Of a stretch of 64,000 nt of DNA, positions 47,802-59,508 are shown piece after piece (the first letter of the stretch is position 1; each line of letters begins with the position of its first letter). The DNA comes from Oopsacas minuta (lineage: Eukaryota > Animalia > Porifera). The stretch is taken from assembly GCA_024704765.1 (NCBI GenBank), contig JAKMXF010000144.1:496001-560000 (forward strand), read 5' to 3'. The notes beneath the pieces were generated by a model, which was not told the DNA's origin, did not search any database, and saw only the letters and a list, made by a program, of their open reading frames with translations. The translations under genes and the position numbers were made by a program.

Positions 47802-50800
47802 ATGTGTGCCAACCAGACTACAAATGGGAGAGATAGCGATAAGAATATTCTACCAGGTCTCAATACGGATGAGAAAGAAGGAGGCCTGTATGTGAGAAAG
47901 AGAGCTAACAAACAAGAATCTAATTCACCATCTCAACCTAAGAGATCTTTGCTAGGATTAGATCAGCTAGCTGAAGAGAGACGGAAAATCCAAACAGAAA
48001 ATATTTTTAAAATTCCTCAAAAATTAAGAACTGCTCCCTCATTGAGAGAGCATAAGGGTGATGAGGCTCTGTATACATTCTCAAATTCCTGGAAGAAGAG
48101 AGGTGATAAAAACCGCGATAAAAGGGCTGTAGACAGACGCTATCGGTCTCAAGAGGATGATACACCTGGGTCTCTGCATGGGGTTAAGTGGCGTGATAGA
48201 TGGCGTGATCAAGTGAGGGAACGTGATAAGCGACATCCCCTATACGCTACGTCATGTCACCCTAGAAAAGAGAGGAAGAGCACTCATTCTAGGAGAGAGA
48301 GCTCTAGAAGGGAAGAGGGAGAGTACACACCTACGCCTGATCAGAGAATGTTAAAACAAATGTTGACTCCTTCTAGAGCTGCGTGGGATGAAAATGATTT
48401 GGTAAATATATTACGTCATAATATCTGTATTACGTGTACGTATTTCTATATTTAGCATTTATACAGGTTTCTGGTAGTAATCATCCATGGGACAGTCCAA
48501 CTTCTAACCGACCCAATTCTCCCGACCTCTCCCCCTCACAGGTATCTCCCTCCAGACGGGAGTGGGCAGAGGAGCAGAGACGATTGGATCGTGCCTGGTA
48601 TGACCAGGAGGAGACCGGGGATATGTTCGATGAGACACACAATGACATGGCTAACCTCCGTATAGACTATGTGGAGAAGAAGGAAGAGCAGGTGAGATCT
48701 AGAGAGACAGCTAGACAGAGAGAGAGGAGGAGAGATACTGAGTTATGGGAGGAGAATAGACTGTTTGTCAGTGGAGTTATTAAGAGGGATAATTCTATGT
48801 TATTTGATGAAGAGGAAGAAATAGGGCGTACTCACCTATTGGTCAGTTAATATTCAATCTTAGATTATGTATTTATGTGTTTAATATATGGACCATATCG
48901 ACCATTGATATTTTGATATTCGTAGGTATCAAATCCTGTTCCTCCTTTCTTGGATGGGAGAGCAATATTTTCACGTCAACCAGAGCCAGTCATCCCTATT
49001 AAAGACCCTACTTCTGATCTCGCGGTTCTTAGTAAGAAAGGCTCTAAGCTAGTCAGATATCATCGCGATGAGAAAGAGCGTAAGAAAGCGCAGAAAAAGG
49101 AGCTTTCTCTAGCTGGCAGCAGAATGGGAGATATCCTTGGTGTGAAATCTGAAATCAAAGATGAAGACGAAATAGAAGATGATTCTAACTACAAGAGCAG
49201 TCACCAGTTTGCTAAATACATTAGTCAAACCAAGGATGAGGGAAGTAGTAACTTCTCTCGTACAAAGACAATACAACAACAGAGACAGTATCTTCCTATA
49301 TACGCTTCAAGAGAAGAGCTAATGCGATTAATCAGGCAGAATCGTGTTATTATAATTGTGGGAGAAACTGGTTCAGGAAAAACTACACAACTTACTCAGT
49401 ACTTATATGAAGAAGGTATGAGTCATTACGGTATGATAGGTTGTACTCAGCCTAGAAGAGTAGCAGCTATGAGTGTAGCTAAACGGGTATCTCAGGAGAT
49501 GGGAACAGAGTTAGGATGTGTAGTAGGGTACTCTATAAGGTTTGAAGATATTACTTCTAGTGATACTAAGATTAAGTATATGACTGATGGAATTCTATTG
49601 AGGTGAGCAGTATATGAAATTAATATTGTTAATACGTATACAAAGTGCTTGCGAATTTCTTTAAGCCCTCCACCAGTAGCTCGGTAAAAGGATCGGGGCA
49701 TAGCCGTGGTGTTCATATTAACTTTAATTTCTATAGAGAATCGCTACGAGATCCAGACTTAGACATGTACTCAGCTATTATAATGGATGAAGCTCACGAG
49801 CGATCACTCAACACAGATGTATTATTTGGTTTGTTACGAGAAGTTGTAGCCAGGAGACGTGATCTTAAACTTATTGTTACTTCTGCAACCATGGATGCTG
49901 AGAAGTTCTCAGACTTCTTCGGTAATATTCCTATCTTCCACATTCCTGGTAGAACATTTCCTGTTGACGTCATGTTTAATAGAGATAATGTTGAAGATTA
50001 TGTAGAGGCAGCAGTTAAGCAGGTGATTCAATTATTTATAAGAATTTCCATAGAGTTTTTGACTTATATATTCTTATTAGATAATCACTATCCACTTATC
50101 TTCCCCGAGGGGAGATATCCTTGTATTCATGCCAGGACAAGAAGAGATAGAGGTAACCTGTGACGTAGTAACAGATCGTCTCCAACAGCTGGATGAGTGT
50201 CCTCCCCTCGCAGTGCTGCCTATATTCTCACAACTTCCATCTGATCTCCAAGCTAAGATATTCCAGAGAGCTCCAGAAGGTGTACGCAAGTGTATAGTAG
50301 CAACGAATATAGCAGAGACATCTCTCACTGTAGACGGAATTATGTATGTAGTTGATACTGGATACTGTAAACTGAAAGTATTCAATCCTAAGATAGGCAT
50401 GGACGCTCTACAGTTATACCCAGTCAGTCAGGCTAATGCTAGACAGAGGTCAGGACGAGCTGGGAGAACAGGAGCAGGACAGTGTTTTAGACTGTACACA
50501 GAGAATTCTTTTGGGTAAGAAATAGTCTTTCAATATTTTAAGTATTTTAATTATTTAAGTATTGAGGCTGAATTACAGTGCTGATTGTATCTTGTTCAGC
50601 TCCACGTGACATTGATTTAAGCATGCGTACTAAAGTCAATCAGGGTCGCCGTGGGAATGGGAATGGAAATTGAAATTCCGTTCCCACGGCAACCGTGACG
50701 TCCATTCATTATAATCATGCAAGTATGTATCATAATTTTGACTTTGAGAAAATTATCACTTAGCAAATTTATTCGGACTATGGAACTAAAATACGTTTCT

Positions 50801-53800
50801 AAACAATACAGTATAATATATAAATACGTATAACTATTCTAAATTGGATTTCTATCCTCTAATAAAACCATAAATTCTCATACTTTTGGAGGTACTAGCC
50901 TGACCTCTCGTGCTGGGAACCAATGCTTGGATATCTCCTCAATGAAAGCAGGTCCTACTCCACAGCAACCTCCTACTACGTTACATCCCTTATCTACCCA
51001 TCCTTTGATAGTATCTCTGTAATTTGTTACATCAAGATTATGAGGCTTAGCGGGGAACCCACTTGGGCCATCAAATCTCTCCCATAGCTTATTTACAGCC
51101 TCTTTATCAGGTATTGGATTGAGATCGTTAGCATAAGCTGCAATGTATTTAATATTCTTCCTTCCCTTCACTACTTCCATAACCGTGTCTAGTCCTTTCG
51201 TTATTGTGTAATGATTTGAACAGTTGAGTGATACAGCTAGCAATTTGGGGAATCTATCTAGTATAATGGGCAATACTTCTTTCAAAGGCTCTTCACTGTG
51301 AAGCACACACTTATCATTATCCTGTAAAGATAGAGATATCCATATAGGTTTGTCTGATACTCTTGTTACACCTGTGAGAGACGCTATAGCCTCATCCAGA
51401 CTAGACATAGTCTCGCATAAGTAGAAATGCACGGATGGTTTCAATGCATTTGCTATTTTCTCATAGAGTAGACTAGCTTCTTCCATTTTCTCAATTTTCT
51501 CTCCTTGGAAACTGTAGTTTAGCGGAGGAATGCAACCAGCAATTAGAATAGGACGCTTAGTGGTAGGACGCATGGTGTCTACAGCCTTCACTGCTAGCTC
51601 ACCTGACAGTTTAACCAACTCCTCCATCCTGTCTAGCATACCGACGTTATTCAGAAATCTCGGTACAGTACTGTAGTTGTTAGTTGTTATGACGTCAGCA
51701 CCTGCTTGTATGTATCTCTTATGCAAATCTACTATGTATTCTGGTTTATGTATGAGGTATGCTGTGCTCCATAGCTTGTAGAAATCTGGTACTTTTGGGT
51801 ACGTATCATGCAGTTCTGACCCCATTGATCCATCTAGTATCAATCGTAGCTCAGGTTTGAATGTTTCTACTTCAGCTGTTGCCATTTCCTTAAATGTTTC
51901 AAAATGTTAATACACATCCTGTGTATATTTGCAATAAGTATTTCTATTGTGGTTACTGTATATCAACAAGTGAAACTATTATTTCTTATATTCATTATTT
52001 ATTTCATAGACAAAACTGAAATTAATACGTATTAAAGCTGGGAAATATCTACTGGAGCAATATACTAATGATACTAATTAGCTTGATTCTGATATCTTTT
52101 TCAATCTCTCTTGTACTTCTTTTCTATTTTGTCCACGTTCAAATAAGGTTGGTTTAGACCTCCTCACTCCTTTTGACTTATTACCGAATTTGCTGATGTA
52201 TTTATCCCTCTTGATTTGATTCTGAATAGTTTCTGGTATGTCTGGTACAATGTATGCAACTATTGCGACGATTAGAAACACGAAATGCTACAAGAAATAT
52301 AATAAAGTAGTACTGGTTAGTCGTTACTATATAGTTGCTTTGGATTCGATTCATGGGGCAAACTGTTCTATTTCTTGTTTATTAATTATTGAACTTACCT
52401 CAAACATGACTGCAAACATTAGCTTGTATAACATAGTTTTGTAGAAGAACTCCCTCTGTTCTTCTGTCATGTACTCTATTATCTCATAACCAGGGTCAAA
52501 CCTATCAGAACCTTGTTAACATACTCTATGTATACAATTTTATTTCTATTATTGACTCATACCTGCATACTGCAGAACTATTGACGAATTTAACATTACA
52601 CCCACTGTAGAACTTTCCTTCATATTGTGGGTTGCTTGGATCCTGTATAGCCCCTCCATCTCTGTAGTATAATGTTCTAGAATCCTCTGATCCTGTTCTG
52701 TTAGTGAAGAACCTCTCTACTACAATATCGCAGCAATTAGAGGCATTCTTATCCCCCGTGTACGTCTGTGTATCCAGGTATTGTGTATTATTTCTTTTCC
52801 CATCTATGCAGCAGAATCTAGTCCCTGTGATTGCATAAAATGTATCTCATGAATCTTGTTGATTTATTATTCTAAGGCTTACCATTAGTTAGTGTACATT
52901 CACTTGCTACTGTACTATTCTCCCTTATTCCAAGAAAGTCACAACAGTTATTAGAACTAGTGTTATCACCAGTCACTAGCTTCTCAGTGCAGTTACTTTT
53001 GCCTCCATCTTTACAATAGAAAGTACTTGGAAACAGAATCAGATCATCGAAACTAGTCACTACGTTGTCTTCCATAATCCTAATTTCCATAAATATAAAA
53101 AACTGCAACATAGATCTCTATAATCATAATAATAATCTTACTCGAGCGTTCTAGATCTGTAATCAGGGAATGTATCTGCGTATATGAAATCTCTGATAGG
53201 GATTGTAGCTAGTGTTGTGTTAAGATAACCTACTTGTCCTGGATACGTAGCTCTGTAACCCCATAGATTTACTGTACTGCCCAAGAATGGAATTAGAAGT
53301 GACTAAAAGGTACAAAGATATAATAACTTTCCATAAAATATTGTTTTATACTGCTACTATATTAATCTTACATTTGTTATAACTGCGAATTTCGCGATAC
53401 CATCCAAGATGCTATACCAAGGCCCAATGTCTTGTACCCTCTCTGGTACTTGTCGCCTGGTTAGACGGAGATATTTAATGGCGTCTAATCGTATCTCGAA
53501 ATAGTTGTTGATTAACGCGAGTAGAGGAGCGAGAGGAAATGCTGTCGCGAATATTGTCACAAATCCAAATTGAATAACTAAACATTTTCTGTTAAAAATA
53601 AAATTTTGCCTTATACAATAAACTTACCTAATTCCAGATATTCTTCAAACATTCCCGTAGCTGCTCCTGGTTCTAGCTTCAAGTCTCTCTGCCAGGGCGG
53701 CTGACATACTTTACTCACTTCTTTCTCTTTCTTCAACAAAGTGGAGAACTTCCTAATACCAATCTTGACCAGTGGAATACCGAGCTCTTTGATATTATTG

Positions 53801-56800
53801 ATGGTTTGCTTGAGAGCAAATACCACGACAAGTTGGATGGTTAGCTCCAAAAGACATCCATATTGAGCACACTATCAAAAGATTTGTGTTACAGGAAACA
53901 TGTAAATTTGTATTTTTAATTCAGTAAAGATAACTCACATGCTCTAGACCTGTTATCCCTGGTAGTATCAGGTCTCTCCCCGGATAAACTACTAGTATTC
54001 TACCCTTAATGAAAGCAATGTACATTGGTGAAGCGTAGAAATTAACAATTTGGAATAATGCCATCTTAACTGTGAAGGAATCATCATGCTCACTCTGAAT
54101 TCTGTTCAATTCCCATTTTGTTAGAACTATTGCCAATCGTCGGTAAATCTATTTTTAAGTAAAATTCTTTCTTTAAATTGCAACACCTCCGTAATAATTT
54201 CTGTAAATACCTTAAACTTACCGCATTCATAACAAAAATGAATATTAGTTGTAGAATACCAGCTGTTAATGAGATCACCATTGCTCCTGCTAGACTACAG
54301 ATTGCTGCTAGTGTAGGATTATCATGTACACTAATTTGCAGTAATGCTAGTCCAATTATTGGAGCTATTCCTGCTCGGTAGAATATTACACCTATTAGAA
54401 TTGCTATTACAGCCAATACTAAAGTAAGAGTGACGGAGAGACCAGCTAAAATCTTCAGTTTTATCTGTGTTGGCTCTTGGAAAAATTCTGTTTTCTATTT
54501 GCAAGGAATCCAATAATCCCATATCTTATTCCATACTATATTTGGCAAATATTTATTGTGTTTACCCCTGTAATAGGATTGACTTTCCAAATTTGTTTCT
54601 TATATGACTCGTTTTTAGCATTCTTATATCTGTTCCTCATAGTAGTTACAAATTCTGGCCTCGGACTTTCTTCTAGTGCCTCGTAGTCTAGTAGATCCCA
54701 CTCATACTGCAGATAGAATTGATATCTTTTCCAGAACTCCAGGAATAGGATAGCCCAGAAAGACATGAATGCTGCGTATAGTACTGTTCCTTCGTTATCC
54801 AATATGCTTGATATCTTAAAAATAATGTGCAGTTGATTTGGAAATATCAGTCAGTCCCGATCCAACCGCACTATTTACTGATTTTTTTGTAACCTACCTT
54901 CACAAGAAATTGTGATTCGTGAAGTGCTTTGAAGTCACATCTATGACTACAACTAGGACACAGAATTAGAGAATCTCCAGCTTGACTCACCTCTTGTCTA
55001 GGTTTTAACACAGATATATACATTTTGTATGGTTTAAATTAATGCAACAAGTCACTATAACTTACGCTATAATGTTAAACCCTAGAGTATAGGGGCCCAG
55101 TATGAATATGATGAGCCCAAGTAGAGTAGAGCAATGAAGCCATTTGGTATAGAAACCTATTACGTATATAGATATATCATTACGTATAAGTACAATGACC
55201 TTGTCTTTCATTGTACTTACCTAACCAAGCAAAGTATATAGCAACTTTCTCTCCCAAATAGTGTCTAATCTGTGGAATAGGCTGTGTTTTGAAGAATGCT
55301 CTCGGCTTGAAAGAAGCCCAATATAGCTTCAGGAATTGTCTCTCTGTTAGCGGCTTACCCATGTCCTCTTTTTCCTGGTTTTCATTGCCCTATATCATTG
55401 CAAACAAATAAATATTATCGAGAATTTATCTCCAAAACTCACTTCATGCAAAGGGTATGCATCTGTGAATAGCTTTTTCTTGATGAGTTTGTCTATACCA
55501 GTTTTCAATCCATATGGATCATGTCCATAAGATGTAGTTTTGAGTATGTACTCTACAATGCCACATCTCTGTCCACTTGAGAAGAACATATCTTCATCCT
55601 CTATCCCATGGTATCTAGGGTGTAGACTTATTAAAATTAACGTGTTTTGTGTGACGTATTACGAATTAACTCACTTGTAAAGGTTTTTATTTACAAATAT
55701 TTTAGTGCGATACTTTGATTGTTCGAGGTAAAATGGAATTTTTGGCATGAGAAAATGGAATCCTAGTTTCTCAATCAAAGTTTTGTTTAGATTTTGTTTG
55801 AATTGATATTCTGGAAACTCGTCAAGTCCATTAAGATCCTACAAATATTTCATGTTGTAACAAATATCCTACTAGCTAACAGAAATCTAATAGAATTATA
55901 CTTACTTCATAAGGCATAGCATAATTCAACTTCTCAGCATACTTACAGAGGATTTCAAACGGAGCATGTAGTTTGATAAAGTGTATTTCTATCTTCTCTT
56001 TCTCTTTAGAATTCTTGTTCATCAGTTTACGTAACTTACCAAACCTTTTGTCCACTATTCTAGACACCTAAATCTATATTATTAAATCTCAATTGTTGTC
56101 TGTTTGCCTGTTTGTCTGTCTGTTTGTTTGTCTGTCTGTTTGTTTGTCCGTTGTCAAGGAAAGGATTTACGGTATGCACTTTTGAAATTGTCGCGTAACT
56201 ATGTATTTATCGTGTTTATCAAGGAAGTAAATAGTACTGAGGTAATCGAGTATGCTGAGTCCGAATATGATATTGCAAACAACATAATGTGAATATCTGT
56301 TTACTTTTAGGTACATAAATATGTCTATATTATAATACTCACGGGGGCCATCGATTTGGAGAATAATGGATACCTCGAGGCGCAATGCGCCGAGTTCATC
56401 GCGAAGCGACGAGCCAAAGAGTCGTTATTATATTATTTTATAATTAACATGCTATTGCAAAAATTTGTGTATAAGAACCTCTAAGGTTTCTTCTTCCATC
56501 TCTAATCCAACATTTTCGAGTTCTTCCAGGAAATACTCTCTCCTTCTACGTTTATCCTCCAGGTTGTTACCATTTTCAAATTTGTCCACCTGTTCTAGCT
56601 CGATTTGATCTAAATTTACTTCTACTTCTACTTGTGTTTCTTTCTGATACACCAAAATGAAATCTGTGTAAAGAAATGATTATTCTTCGAATTATTATAC
56701 TATTTGACCGTTTGAATAGCACGAGAGTTTAACCAATCTATCTACTATTCCAGTATAATGAAACCAATTAGAAGGTTTACATACACATGTTATGAGGGAA

Positions 56801-59339
56801 ATACTTGCGTAAGGAGAGGATTATTTTCTATAGAATTCAAGATACAGTTTTCCAATGCTCTTCTAATGTTTTATATAAACCTTCAAATCTCTCTGGATTC
56901 TGTCATTCTCGATTTGAATAAACTTATTAATTATGACATTACTGCTTACCAATTCTTCTCTTTCCATCTTTGAATACTTCTTTTATTGGATATCTAAATG
57001 ACTGAAATTTTGTGAAACTTATTGACAAATTCGCGTTTACAATATTTACCTCGTCATCTTCAGTTTCTCCACACTCACTTTGACTAGATGCTATGTGCCA
57101 CAGTTCCTTTGGTTCTAAGAAATGTAAATTTTAATTTATAGCTGAACTTTGTTACATACAGTAGAACCTCGTTAATACGTACACCAAGGGACCGTCGAGA
57201 TCTATACTCCTTATCCGGTGTGCGTGTTAACCGGAGTAAAAACAATTGAATAACCATTGTACGGACTAAAATTGTGTAAATTGTGTTCGTATTAACGAGG
57301 TTTCACTGTATGTGATATAAAGCTATAAATCTTACAAATTGTTGATTCTTCATATAATTGTTTCTATTTTTGCTATTTAACAATATTACTTTACACCACC
57401 TTCCAGTAAGATATTTACTACTTCATTTCAGTGAGTGGAAGATGGGTTCTTATAAAACGCGAGACGCTAGCAAGAACTGCCCGGCTTAAAAGTGAAAACC
57501 TTAACAATTTGCAAACCTTCATAACAATATATCTCAGGTTTCTCATCGAACTCCACCATATTTACTTATTATAACACTCACGGACATATCATTCACATTT
57601 ACTTATATTATACATACCCTCAGCACTCAGGGTATTGTCAACAATATGAATGTGCATACAATAGCCCGTGATTCTAAGAGAATGAGTATACTAACCGTCA
57701 CAACTATTGTTTTATTGAGCTCATGGTTTTTCTATTGTTTATAAATAATTTTCCGATTATGTGTGTGTGTATACGATGGAATATCTCATTTACGGGAAAT
57801 ATTTGTGGTATGTATTTGGTATTTTAGTCTTTTAACTACACACAATTATACTCTAGACTCCGAAAATACGCTTTTTACAATATGTTTTTTACAATATGTT
57901 GTTTACAATACCATTTTCGGCTCAGTATACTCGATTACCCCAGTATGGTCGTTGAAAAAGGAAACAGTTTCTAGCAGTTTCCAGTAGTTTCCAGCAGTTT
58001 CCAGCAGTTTCCAGCAGTTTCCAGCAGTTTCCAGCAGTTTCTAGCAATTTCCAGTAGTTTCCACCATGTTCTACTAGTAACAAGTTATGTTGTTGTTAGG
58101 CAGAATGACTATTACCGATTCTCAGTATTATTTAAGAAACATTTTATTACATGATTAGTAGTATATATTCTACATGATCAGCTAGATTATACACTTCTGC
58201 ATAAGTAAAACTCACATTTTATTGACTACTCATTTCTATTAGTAACGAGATGCTGATGGCAACAGTCCCAGAGATACAACGTACAAATCTATCTAATGTC
58301 GTACTTCTATTGAAATCCCTCGGAGTAAAAGATCTGCTACAATTTCATTTTATGGATCCTCCTCCTCAAGATAACATCCTCAGTTCCATGTACCAACTCT
58401 GGGTTTTAGGTGCTCTGGATAACACAGGGGAGCTAACTGACCTCGGAAGACAGATGGTAGAGTTCCCTCTTGACCCTGCCCTCTCAAAGCTACTGATAGT
58501 ATCTTCAGAAATGGGTTGCTCCGAGGAGGCATTGACTATAGTTTCTATGCTATCAGTACCAGCTATATTCTACCGGCCAAAAGGCAGAGAAGAAGAGAGT
58601 GATCAAGTGAGGGAGAAGTTTGCAGTCCCAGAGTCTGACCACTTGACGTACATGTTTGTATACCAGCAGTGGAAGAAGCAGAACTGTTCATCTGCTTGGT
58701 GTCACGAAAACTTTATTCAGCCCAAATCACTTAAAAAAGTTTGTTGAATATTACATAACAATAATAATTTGATTACCTGACTTAACTCTGTAGGTTAGAG
58801 AGGTGAGAGCCCAGCTTAAAGAAATCCTCCTCCAGCAGAAACTCCCTCTAACTTCGTGTAGCTTTGAATGGGATATAATACGTAAATGTATATGTGCTGC
58901 ATATTTCCATCAAGCTGCTCGTATCAAGGGAGTAGGCGAATATGTTAACATGAGAACAGGTATGCCATGTCATCTACACCCAACTAGTTCTCTATATGGC
59001 ATGGGATATACACCTGATTACGTCATATATCACGAGCTATTGTTAACGTCTAAGGAGTACATGCAGTGTGTAACATCAGTTGATGGTAACTGGTTAGCTG
59101 AATTAGGAGCAATATTCTATACAGTAAAGCAGTCTAGTTGGACTAGAATACAACAGCAGGAAGAGAGTAAGCGTAAGAAAGGAGAAATGGAGAGTGAGAT
59201 GAAGCGAGCTAGGGATAAATTAAATGTTGATAAAGAAAGAGAAGAAAACAAAACGAAAACCACTAGTGATAGATTCAAAATTGCTACCCCGGGACTCATA
59301 AACACTCCCATACAAACGAGGCCACATCACACGTATTGA
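47802..59339 (+). CDS. DHX38: DEAH-box splicing helicase PRP16, 7 exons; intron 5 (50515-58242) is 7728 nt
   Basis: Exons 47802-48401, 48467-48841, 48926-49602, 49737-50022, 50081-50514, 58243-58738 and 58794-59339. Motifs: [51 protein letters not shown]|[24 protein letters not shown]. The ATG at 47802 is inferred. Confidence 0.95.
50641..50697. mobile_element. 57-bp hAT-type mini-MITE consisting almost entirely of TIRs
   Basis: CAGGGTCGCCGTGGGAA...TTCCCACGGCAACCGTG; flanking 8-mers AAGTCAAT and ACGTCCAT match at 6 of 8 positions, consistent with a decayed 8-bp TSD. Confidence 0.7.
50878..51885 (-). CDS. Homocysteine S-methyltransferase family protein, intronless, nested in the DHX38 intron
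   Basis: [36 protein letters not shown]; Zn-ligand motifs LNCS and GGCCG. Confidence 0.92.
   Translation of the reverse strand: MATAEVETFKPELRLILDGSMGSELHDTYPKVPDFYKLWSTAYLIHKPEYIVDLHKRYIQAGADVITTNNYSTVPRFLNNVGMLDRMEELVKLSGELAVKAVDTMRPTTKRPILIAGCIPPLNYSFQGEKIEKMEEASLLYEKIANALKPSVHFYLCETMSSLDEAIASLTGVTRVSDKPIWISLSLQDNDKCVLHSEEPLKEVLPIILDRFPKLLAVSLNCSNHYTITKGLDTVMEVVKGRKNIKYIAAYANDLNPIPDKEAVNKLWERFDGPSGFPAKPHNLDVTNYRDTIKGWVDKGCNVVGGCCGVGPAFIEEISKHWFPAREVRLVPPKV
52078..57559 (-). CDS. ANO: Anoctamin/TMEM16 family channel or scramblase, many exons, nested in the DHX38 intron; first exon tentative
   Basis: FKDGKRRI|[118 protein letters not shown]. Tentative exon 1 57517-57559 ([14 protein letters not shown]) is phase-compatible with the next exon. 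Confidence 0.9.
56100..56147. repeat. TGTT/TGTC tetranucleotide microsatellite in an anoctamin intron
   Basis: Directly visible. Confidence 0.85.
56350..56435. repeat. Dispersed hairpin-rich repeat, copy 2 (CpG-intact)
   Basis: CTCGAGGCGCAATGCGCCGAG and TCGC-GAA-GCGA hairpins; homologous to 33420-33495. Confidence 0.65.
57159..57308. mobile_element. 150-bp Tc1/pogo (Tigger-like) MITE with TA TSD
   Basis: TA|CAGTAGAACCTCGTTAATACG ... CGTATTAACGAGGTTTCACTG|TA; 21-bp TIRs with 2 mismatches. Confidence 0.9.
57896..58063. repeat. Copy of the foldback left-arm module followed by a 10-bp minisatellite (GCAGTTTCCA, about 10 units)
   Basis: 57896-57958 aligns with 31510-31572 (TGTTGTTTACAATA.CAT.TT...CTCAG..TACTCGATTACCC...T.GTCGTTGAAA); the minisatellite spans 57965-58063. 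Confidence 0.8.
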
Positions 59340-59508
59340 TACCTTATCACAATTCTGTATTATTTAGATGTTAATTTCATTCAACACACTTAGTTTATAC
59401 AAATAAATCAGGAATTTTCTGAAAACGAATTTGATAGAAATTTTATATTTGGGGAATTTGGCTCAGAATTATTAGTGGAATTGAATTTGTTTTTAGCTTT
59501 AAAATTGC

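Follow-up and report, generated by a model that had tools for sequence, protein, structure and literature searches.

Two antisense genes within a predicted 7.7-kb intron of the spliceosomal helicase gene PRP16/DHX38 of the glass sponge Oopsacas minuta

Nested genes are a well-described feature of glass-sponge genomes: 2432 of them, or 12.4% of genes, have been reported in Aphrocallistes vastus, and 83 were counted in Oopsacas minuta, a low number that was ascribed to annotation settings (PMC10282587). The two species share synteny for nearly half of their genes, with extensive microsynteny (PMC10282587). Nests being very common in glass sponges, as already reported, the one described here in the PRP16/DHX38 gene of O. 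minuta is not rare in kind. It shares with the published glass-sponge cases, such as glassin within another gene, the presence of a whole gene in an intron of a compact genome with otherwise tiny introns, a layout apparently conserved between hexactinellids, and an O. minuta annotation that misses or breaks the hosts (PMC10282587). Unlike in those nests, and without any difference in kind, the host is a core spliceosomal helicase and a single intron holds two guests, one of them itself interrupted by about 18 introns. In Drosophila and mammals, nested genes likewise lie within a single long intron and fall under the same hypotheses of interference; fly guests, however, are typically short young duplicates inserted in long introns (PMC5174743, PMC3192792), whereas the O. 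minuta guests include a large multi-exon anoctamin and the PRP16 intron owes its length to its guests alone. The locus thus represents a further example of a known, common glass-sponge feature rather than a new kind of genome organisation, and provides a clean, probably conserved case for testing, in an early-branching animal, whether an essential host suffers interference from antisense genes nested in it.

PRP16/DHX38 lies on the plus strand of the window (the whole 64-kb stretch of DNA analysed, whose numbering is used throughout) and is the sole orthologue in the O. minuta genome (61,460,524 b in 365 contigs). Its model comprises seven coding exons and about 1137 aa, with a local count giving 1137 codons without a stop and every helicase motif, including the GETGSGKT, DEAH, SAT and QRSGRAGR motifs read in the exons. 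Exons were searched singly, with PDB 5yzg chain Z as the human reference, and their coordinates were joined only locally for counting length, stops and motifs; the short introns were placed at GT-AG pairs restoring the PRP16 alignment, and the KKV/REVRAQL junction between the last two exons is confirmed by the public protein P0241. The first in-frame ATG, at 47802, is a candidate start only. The Pfam domains follow one another in the order RecA1-RecA2-WH-ratchet-OB, and the best match is PRP16 rather than DHX8, DHX16 or DHX15, with 225-288 bits for PRP16 chains versus 155-199 bits for DHX8. Compared with human PRP16/DHX38, the sponge protein has the same domain order, all helicase motifs and approximately 78-83% identity over the intron-flanking exons, although its N-terminal region is shorter (~1137 aa in total versus 1227). 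The 3' half of the gene is single-copy in the 61.5-Mb genome, where the runner-up match is a 58% paralogue, and no second DNA copy of the region was found in the O. minuta genome. The next plus-strand gene (ORF from 59509) begins just 170 nt past the PRP16 stop, with positions 59340-59508 in between, an indication of tight gene packing.

The host coding sequence breaks at TTT GG/GTAAGA (50515) and resumes behind the acceptor TTTCTATTAG/T AAC GAG ATG (58242/58243). The exons on either side align to human PRP16 with no gap except at the split codon GG/T, which corresponds to residue 875, so that nothing is missing between the two halves, and the in-frame break and resumption reported in the earlier note stand as described. 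That note had also given 55-135 nt for the other introns and a more than 50-fold excess for this one; they measure 65, 84, 134, 58 and 55 nt, which makes the 7728-nt intron 58 to 140 times longer. GC content is even over the locus, and the 64-kb window contains no N. Contiguous alignment and single copy identify the flanking exons as parts of one host gene, and the complete coding sequence of each guest, including a putative first anoctamin exon and accompanied by putative UTRs, lies between the host donor and acceptor. In all, the intron contains two minus-strand guests, four repeat or MITE elements and one microsatellite (Table 1). Splicing is predicted to join 50514 to 58243; among matches of 91-289 aa, no RNA-derived protein spanning this junction was found with high identity. 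The sequence supports a single PRP16 gene in which the codon at the RecA2/winged-helix junction would be split by one giant intron carrying two antisense guests, a reading strengthened by the acceptor and the gene linkage that related glass sponges have kept.

Table 1. Features of the PRP16/DHX38 locus and of its guest-bearing intron (positions in the window)
Feature	Position	Strand	Details
PRP16/DHX38 exon 1 (first identified coding exon)	47802..48401	+	ORF; frame check; following intron predicted at 48402-48466
PRP16/DHX38 exon 2	48467..48841	+	Junction after THLL restores alignment beginning at human PRP16 residue 417
PRP16/DHX38 exon 3 (RecA1, GETGSGKT)	48926..49602	+	Human PRP16 417-635, E 5e-85
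PRP16/DHX38 exon 4 (DEAH, SAT)	49737..50022	+	Human PRP16 634-736
PRP16/DHX38 exon 5 (RecA2, QRSGRAGR; Helicase_C)	50081..50514	+	Human PRP16 747-874, E 2e-66; last letters are GG of the split codon
PRP16/DHX38 intron 5 (host intron)	50515..58242	+	7728 nt, GTAAGA...TATTAG, phase 2, no N
Palindromic mini-MITE	50640..50698	.	59 nt; 21-nt TIR, 86% complementary; flanks AAGTCAAT / ACGTCCAT
Likely poly(A) signal of the methyltransferase (putative)	50768..50773	-	AATAAA ~105 nt past the stop
Guest 1, intronless, homocysteine S-methyltransferase family	50878..51885	-	335 aa, stop codon included; PF02574 E 1e-49
Likely poly(A) signal of the anoctamin (putative)	51998..52003	-	AATAAA ~75 nt past the stop, ~110 nt before the methyltransferase ATG
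Guest 2, anoctamin (TMEM16)	52078 to at least 57114	-	~18-19 exons (about 18 coding)
Two adjoining dispersed-repeat segments	56070-56234 and 56235-56430	.	Within the 411-nt anoctamin intron; dozens of copies at 84-95%
(TGTC)n run	56093-56152	.	Inside the dispersed-repeat segments of 56070-56430
MITE with 31-nt terminal inverted repeats	57154..57313	.	160 nt; at least 12 copies at 85-92%; putative anoctamin first intron or 5' region
Candidate anoctamin first coding exon (putative)	57517..57559	-	ATG + 43 nt, donor GTTTGC, phase 1, acceptor AG 57116-57115
Foldback arm, isolated inverted copy of the first part of the 56235-56430 family	57888..57957	.	Multi-copy
Tandem repeat (CAGTTTCCAG) x 9.9	57965..58063	.	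180 nt upstream of the host acceptor; presumed anoctamin promoter region
PRP16/DHX38 exon 6 (winged helix and ratchet; HA2_N, HA2_C)	58243..58738	+	Human PRP16 876-1041, E 3e-85; first letter is T of the split codon
PRP16/DHX38 last exon (OB fold, stop codon)	58794..59339	+	Human PRP16 1044-1209

The larger guest is a whole multi-exon antisense anoctamin with its own introns and repeats, as the earlier note had proposed. Its open minus-strand pieces, spanning 56679 to 52081, match in colinear order Anoct_dimer positions 10-221 and Anoctamin positions 1-460, and among solved structures anoctamin-6 and anoctamin-1 come closest. The motifs NNIKE (NN..E), FEEYLE and NNYFEIRLD, read in the exon pieces, correspond to the acidic calcium site on helices 6-8 of TMEM16A; both Pfam domains together with these motifs place the protein among the anoctamins (TMEM16). 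Introns are 50-111 nt long, apart from two of 286 and 411 nt, and carry canonical splice pairs; exon ends are uncertain in the loop region 53141-52500. The exon 57114-56950 carries the conserved N-terminal FKDGKRRI motif and lacks an ATG (ORF 56942-57130), so a further exon upstream is required. A candidate for it is located beyond the 160-nt MITE, which would accordingly fall in the first anoctamin intron. The anoctamin stop and the methyltransferase ATG are separated by 192 nt (51886-52077), making the guests a tight head-to-tail pair, and the AATAAA inside this gap would leave about 110 nt for a methyltransferase promoter.

The smaller guest, also whole and antisense and intronless as previously claimed, matches PF02574 over profile positions 1-281 of 283, i.e., along its full length. 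Cysteines of its LNC and GGCCG motifs align with the matching cysteines of E. coli MmuM (5dml), which accounts for the zinc-binding Cys triad, and its scores fall under the NCBIfam equivalog cut-offs, which places it at the family level. Six orthologue clusters at 65-72% identity were found in other glass-sponge assemblies; beyond these, its nearest relatives are marine proteobacterial proteins with at most 36% identity. A quick tree did not resolve the position of the sponge clade, which has a long stem and joins bacterial and algal sequences in a polytomy; an ancient horizontal transfer of the gene from bacteria is possible. A metagenome scan with the methyltransferase returned no match. For two contigs of relatives, of 1,220,174 b (P0257/P0259) and 1,155,672 b (P0123/P0258), a pair of methyltransferase-type proteins is listed on each, which may represent a tandem duplication or alternative calls of one gene in the sponge concerned.

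Repeats are found close to both ends of the intron. The mini-MITE near the donor, at 50640-50698, is indeed a multi-copy palindromic element, with at least 18 genomic copies; its earlier attribution to the hAT type is consistent with the 21-nt TIR and with 8-bp flanks identical at six of eight positions, and goes no further than that. The foldback-arm repeat reported near the acceptor was found as described: it is multi-copy in the genome, and genomic sites that match 57888-57957 also match 56235-56430, on the opposite strand.

Comparison with other glass sponges points to an old arrangement. In other assemblies, a word search with PRP16 exon 6 retrieved ORF-type calls that are 85-97% identical to it and that all overrun the KSLKKV donor into unrelated sequence. 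Four relatives' calls also extend upstream, reading MSYS/NEMLMATV or ...FCFS/NEMLIATV. The S before NE, seen at the protein level, can be read as a codon made of the acceptor AG and the following T, as in O. minuta; what precedes it is not PRP16 sequence but a stretch with many F, C, S and Y residues, as expected of a translated pyrimidine tract. This reading together with the tract-like residues suggests that the PRP16 intron border is conserved in relatives. Exon 6 and methyltransferase orthologues share ten contigs, recognised by the matching sizes listed for each cluster member and ranging from 67 kb to 1.22 Mb (67,494; 96,047; 324,920; 711,367; 846,678; 927,430; 984,920; 1,026,804; 1,155,672 and 1,220,174 b). 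An anoctamin exon at 84-87% identity is present on five of the ten, and methyltransferase and anoctamin exon also occur together on a 13,716-b contig. Linkage of the trio is therefore conserved in several glass-sponge assemblies, in the sense of co-occurrence on a contig and not of order or strand. The synteny question raised in the earlier note is answered to this extent: the acceptor and the contig linkage are kept. The nest is probably ancient and probably common to related sponges.

It is very probable that the locus is an ordinary glass-sponge nest, composed of a PRP16 host and two antisense guests and expressed by normal cis-splicing. PRP16/DHX38 would be transcribed on the plus strand across 11.5 kb, and its fifth intron, lying in phase 2 in the codon that joins the RecA2 and winged-helix domains, would be removed in the usual way, with the gene's best donor (GTAAGA) and an acceptor rich in T. 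The guests would be independent opposite-strand units arranged head to tail, anoctamin first and homocysteine S-methyltransferase behind it, each with its own short putative promoter region and its own putative AATAAA signal. The host pre-mRNA would not expose their splice and poly(A) signals, which lie on the opposite strand. The arrangement would be old, because relatives keep the same acceptor and have the three genes on one contig, and no special regulatory role would be needed to account for it.

The public annotation presents the host differently. KAI6656541.1 (P0241, LOD99_1336, 344 aa, “hypothetical protein”) corresponds to the last two PRP16 exons, 58250-59339, with an internal Met as its start at ATG 58250. 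Such a model is what would be expected if the gene had undergone fission into two separate genes, encoding a RecA1-RecA2 protein ending in ENSFG and a WH-ratchet-OB protein starting with MLMATV; the break at a domain boundary and the immediate stop met on donor read-through (TAA within GTAAGA) are also compatible with fission. This explanation is nevertheless highly improbable, as the codon is split at a canonical GT-AG intron, the PRP16 alignment loses no residue and the genome has no other PRP16, while the supposed start Met is variable, some relatives' ORF calls beginning two residues later at MATV. We also know of no split DEAH-box spliceosomal helicase. The annotation itself is blind to introns over 5 kb: for O. 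minuta, RNA was mapped by TopHat with -I 5000, i.e., with a maximum intron of 5000 nt (PMC10280926), and an intron of 7728 nt could therefore not be detected. This mapping limit, and not biology, is the best account of the split public model. The deposited gene set thus apparently holds PRP16/DHX38, a core splicing factor, in pieces, and surveys of “missing” or “truncated” core genes should allow for giant guest-bearing introns.

An assembly chimera, in which the 7.7-kb guest segment would have been misplaced into a short PRP16 intron, is conceivable for an assembly whose scaffolding and gap filling used PacBio and Illumina reads (PMC10280926) and with dispersed repeats close to both intron ends; yet the absence of N from the window, the uniform composition of the locus and the linkage on contigs from several relatives' independent assemblies, among them contigs of 13.7 kb (methyltransferase and anoctamin), 67 kb and 96 kb, render it extremely improbable. 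A functional nest, in which transcriptional interference from antisense transcription of the guests would tune PRP16 output, or the host that of the guests, would fit the linkage of the trio across several glass-sponge assemblies, which is compatible with an old nest, and nested-gene interference is known from both flies and mammals (PMC5174743, PMC3192792). The high microsynteny of glass sponges would, however, lead one to expect retention just as well, and we regard such a function as very unlikely. Sense-strand AATAAA is not depleted in the host intron (6 observed versus 6.0 expected from composition), and a count that composition predicts gives no sign of selection on host read-through. 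Regulation by interference has, moreover, been discussed before as a general hypothesis on nested genes (PMC5174743, PMC3192792). A bolder reading, which we also hold to be very unlikely, is that the nest has been kept because this one giant intron acts as a timing or interference device, coupling the dosage of PRP16, a helicase of the second splicing step, to antisense guest transcription; separately, the methyltransferase may be an ancient bacterial acquisition fixed in the intron.

Outside sponges, the position of the intron can be compared at a wider evolutionary scale. A metagenome scan with PRP16 exon 6 yielded 80 eukaryotic loci, with no sponge contig among them. Sixty-nine loci were examined, those left out being possibly vertebrate (L016, L026-L029, L033, L034, L046, L066, L068 and L077); L025, L031 and L032 were set aside after showing a vertebrate-type peptide. 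The two exons run on without an intron at the O. minuta position in about 30 protist-like loci, and in worm-like or other animal-like loci introns are located five to nine codons upstream of it. An ancestral origin of the intron position is not borne out at this breadth, since only four of the 69 loci (L041-L044) have a phase-2 intron in the same PRP16 codon; it is 58 nt long and lies at about 9937-9997 in L041.
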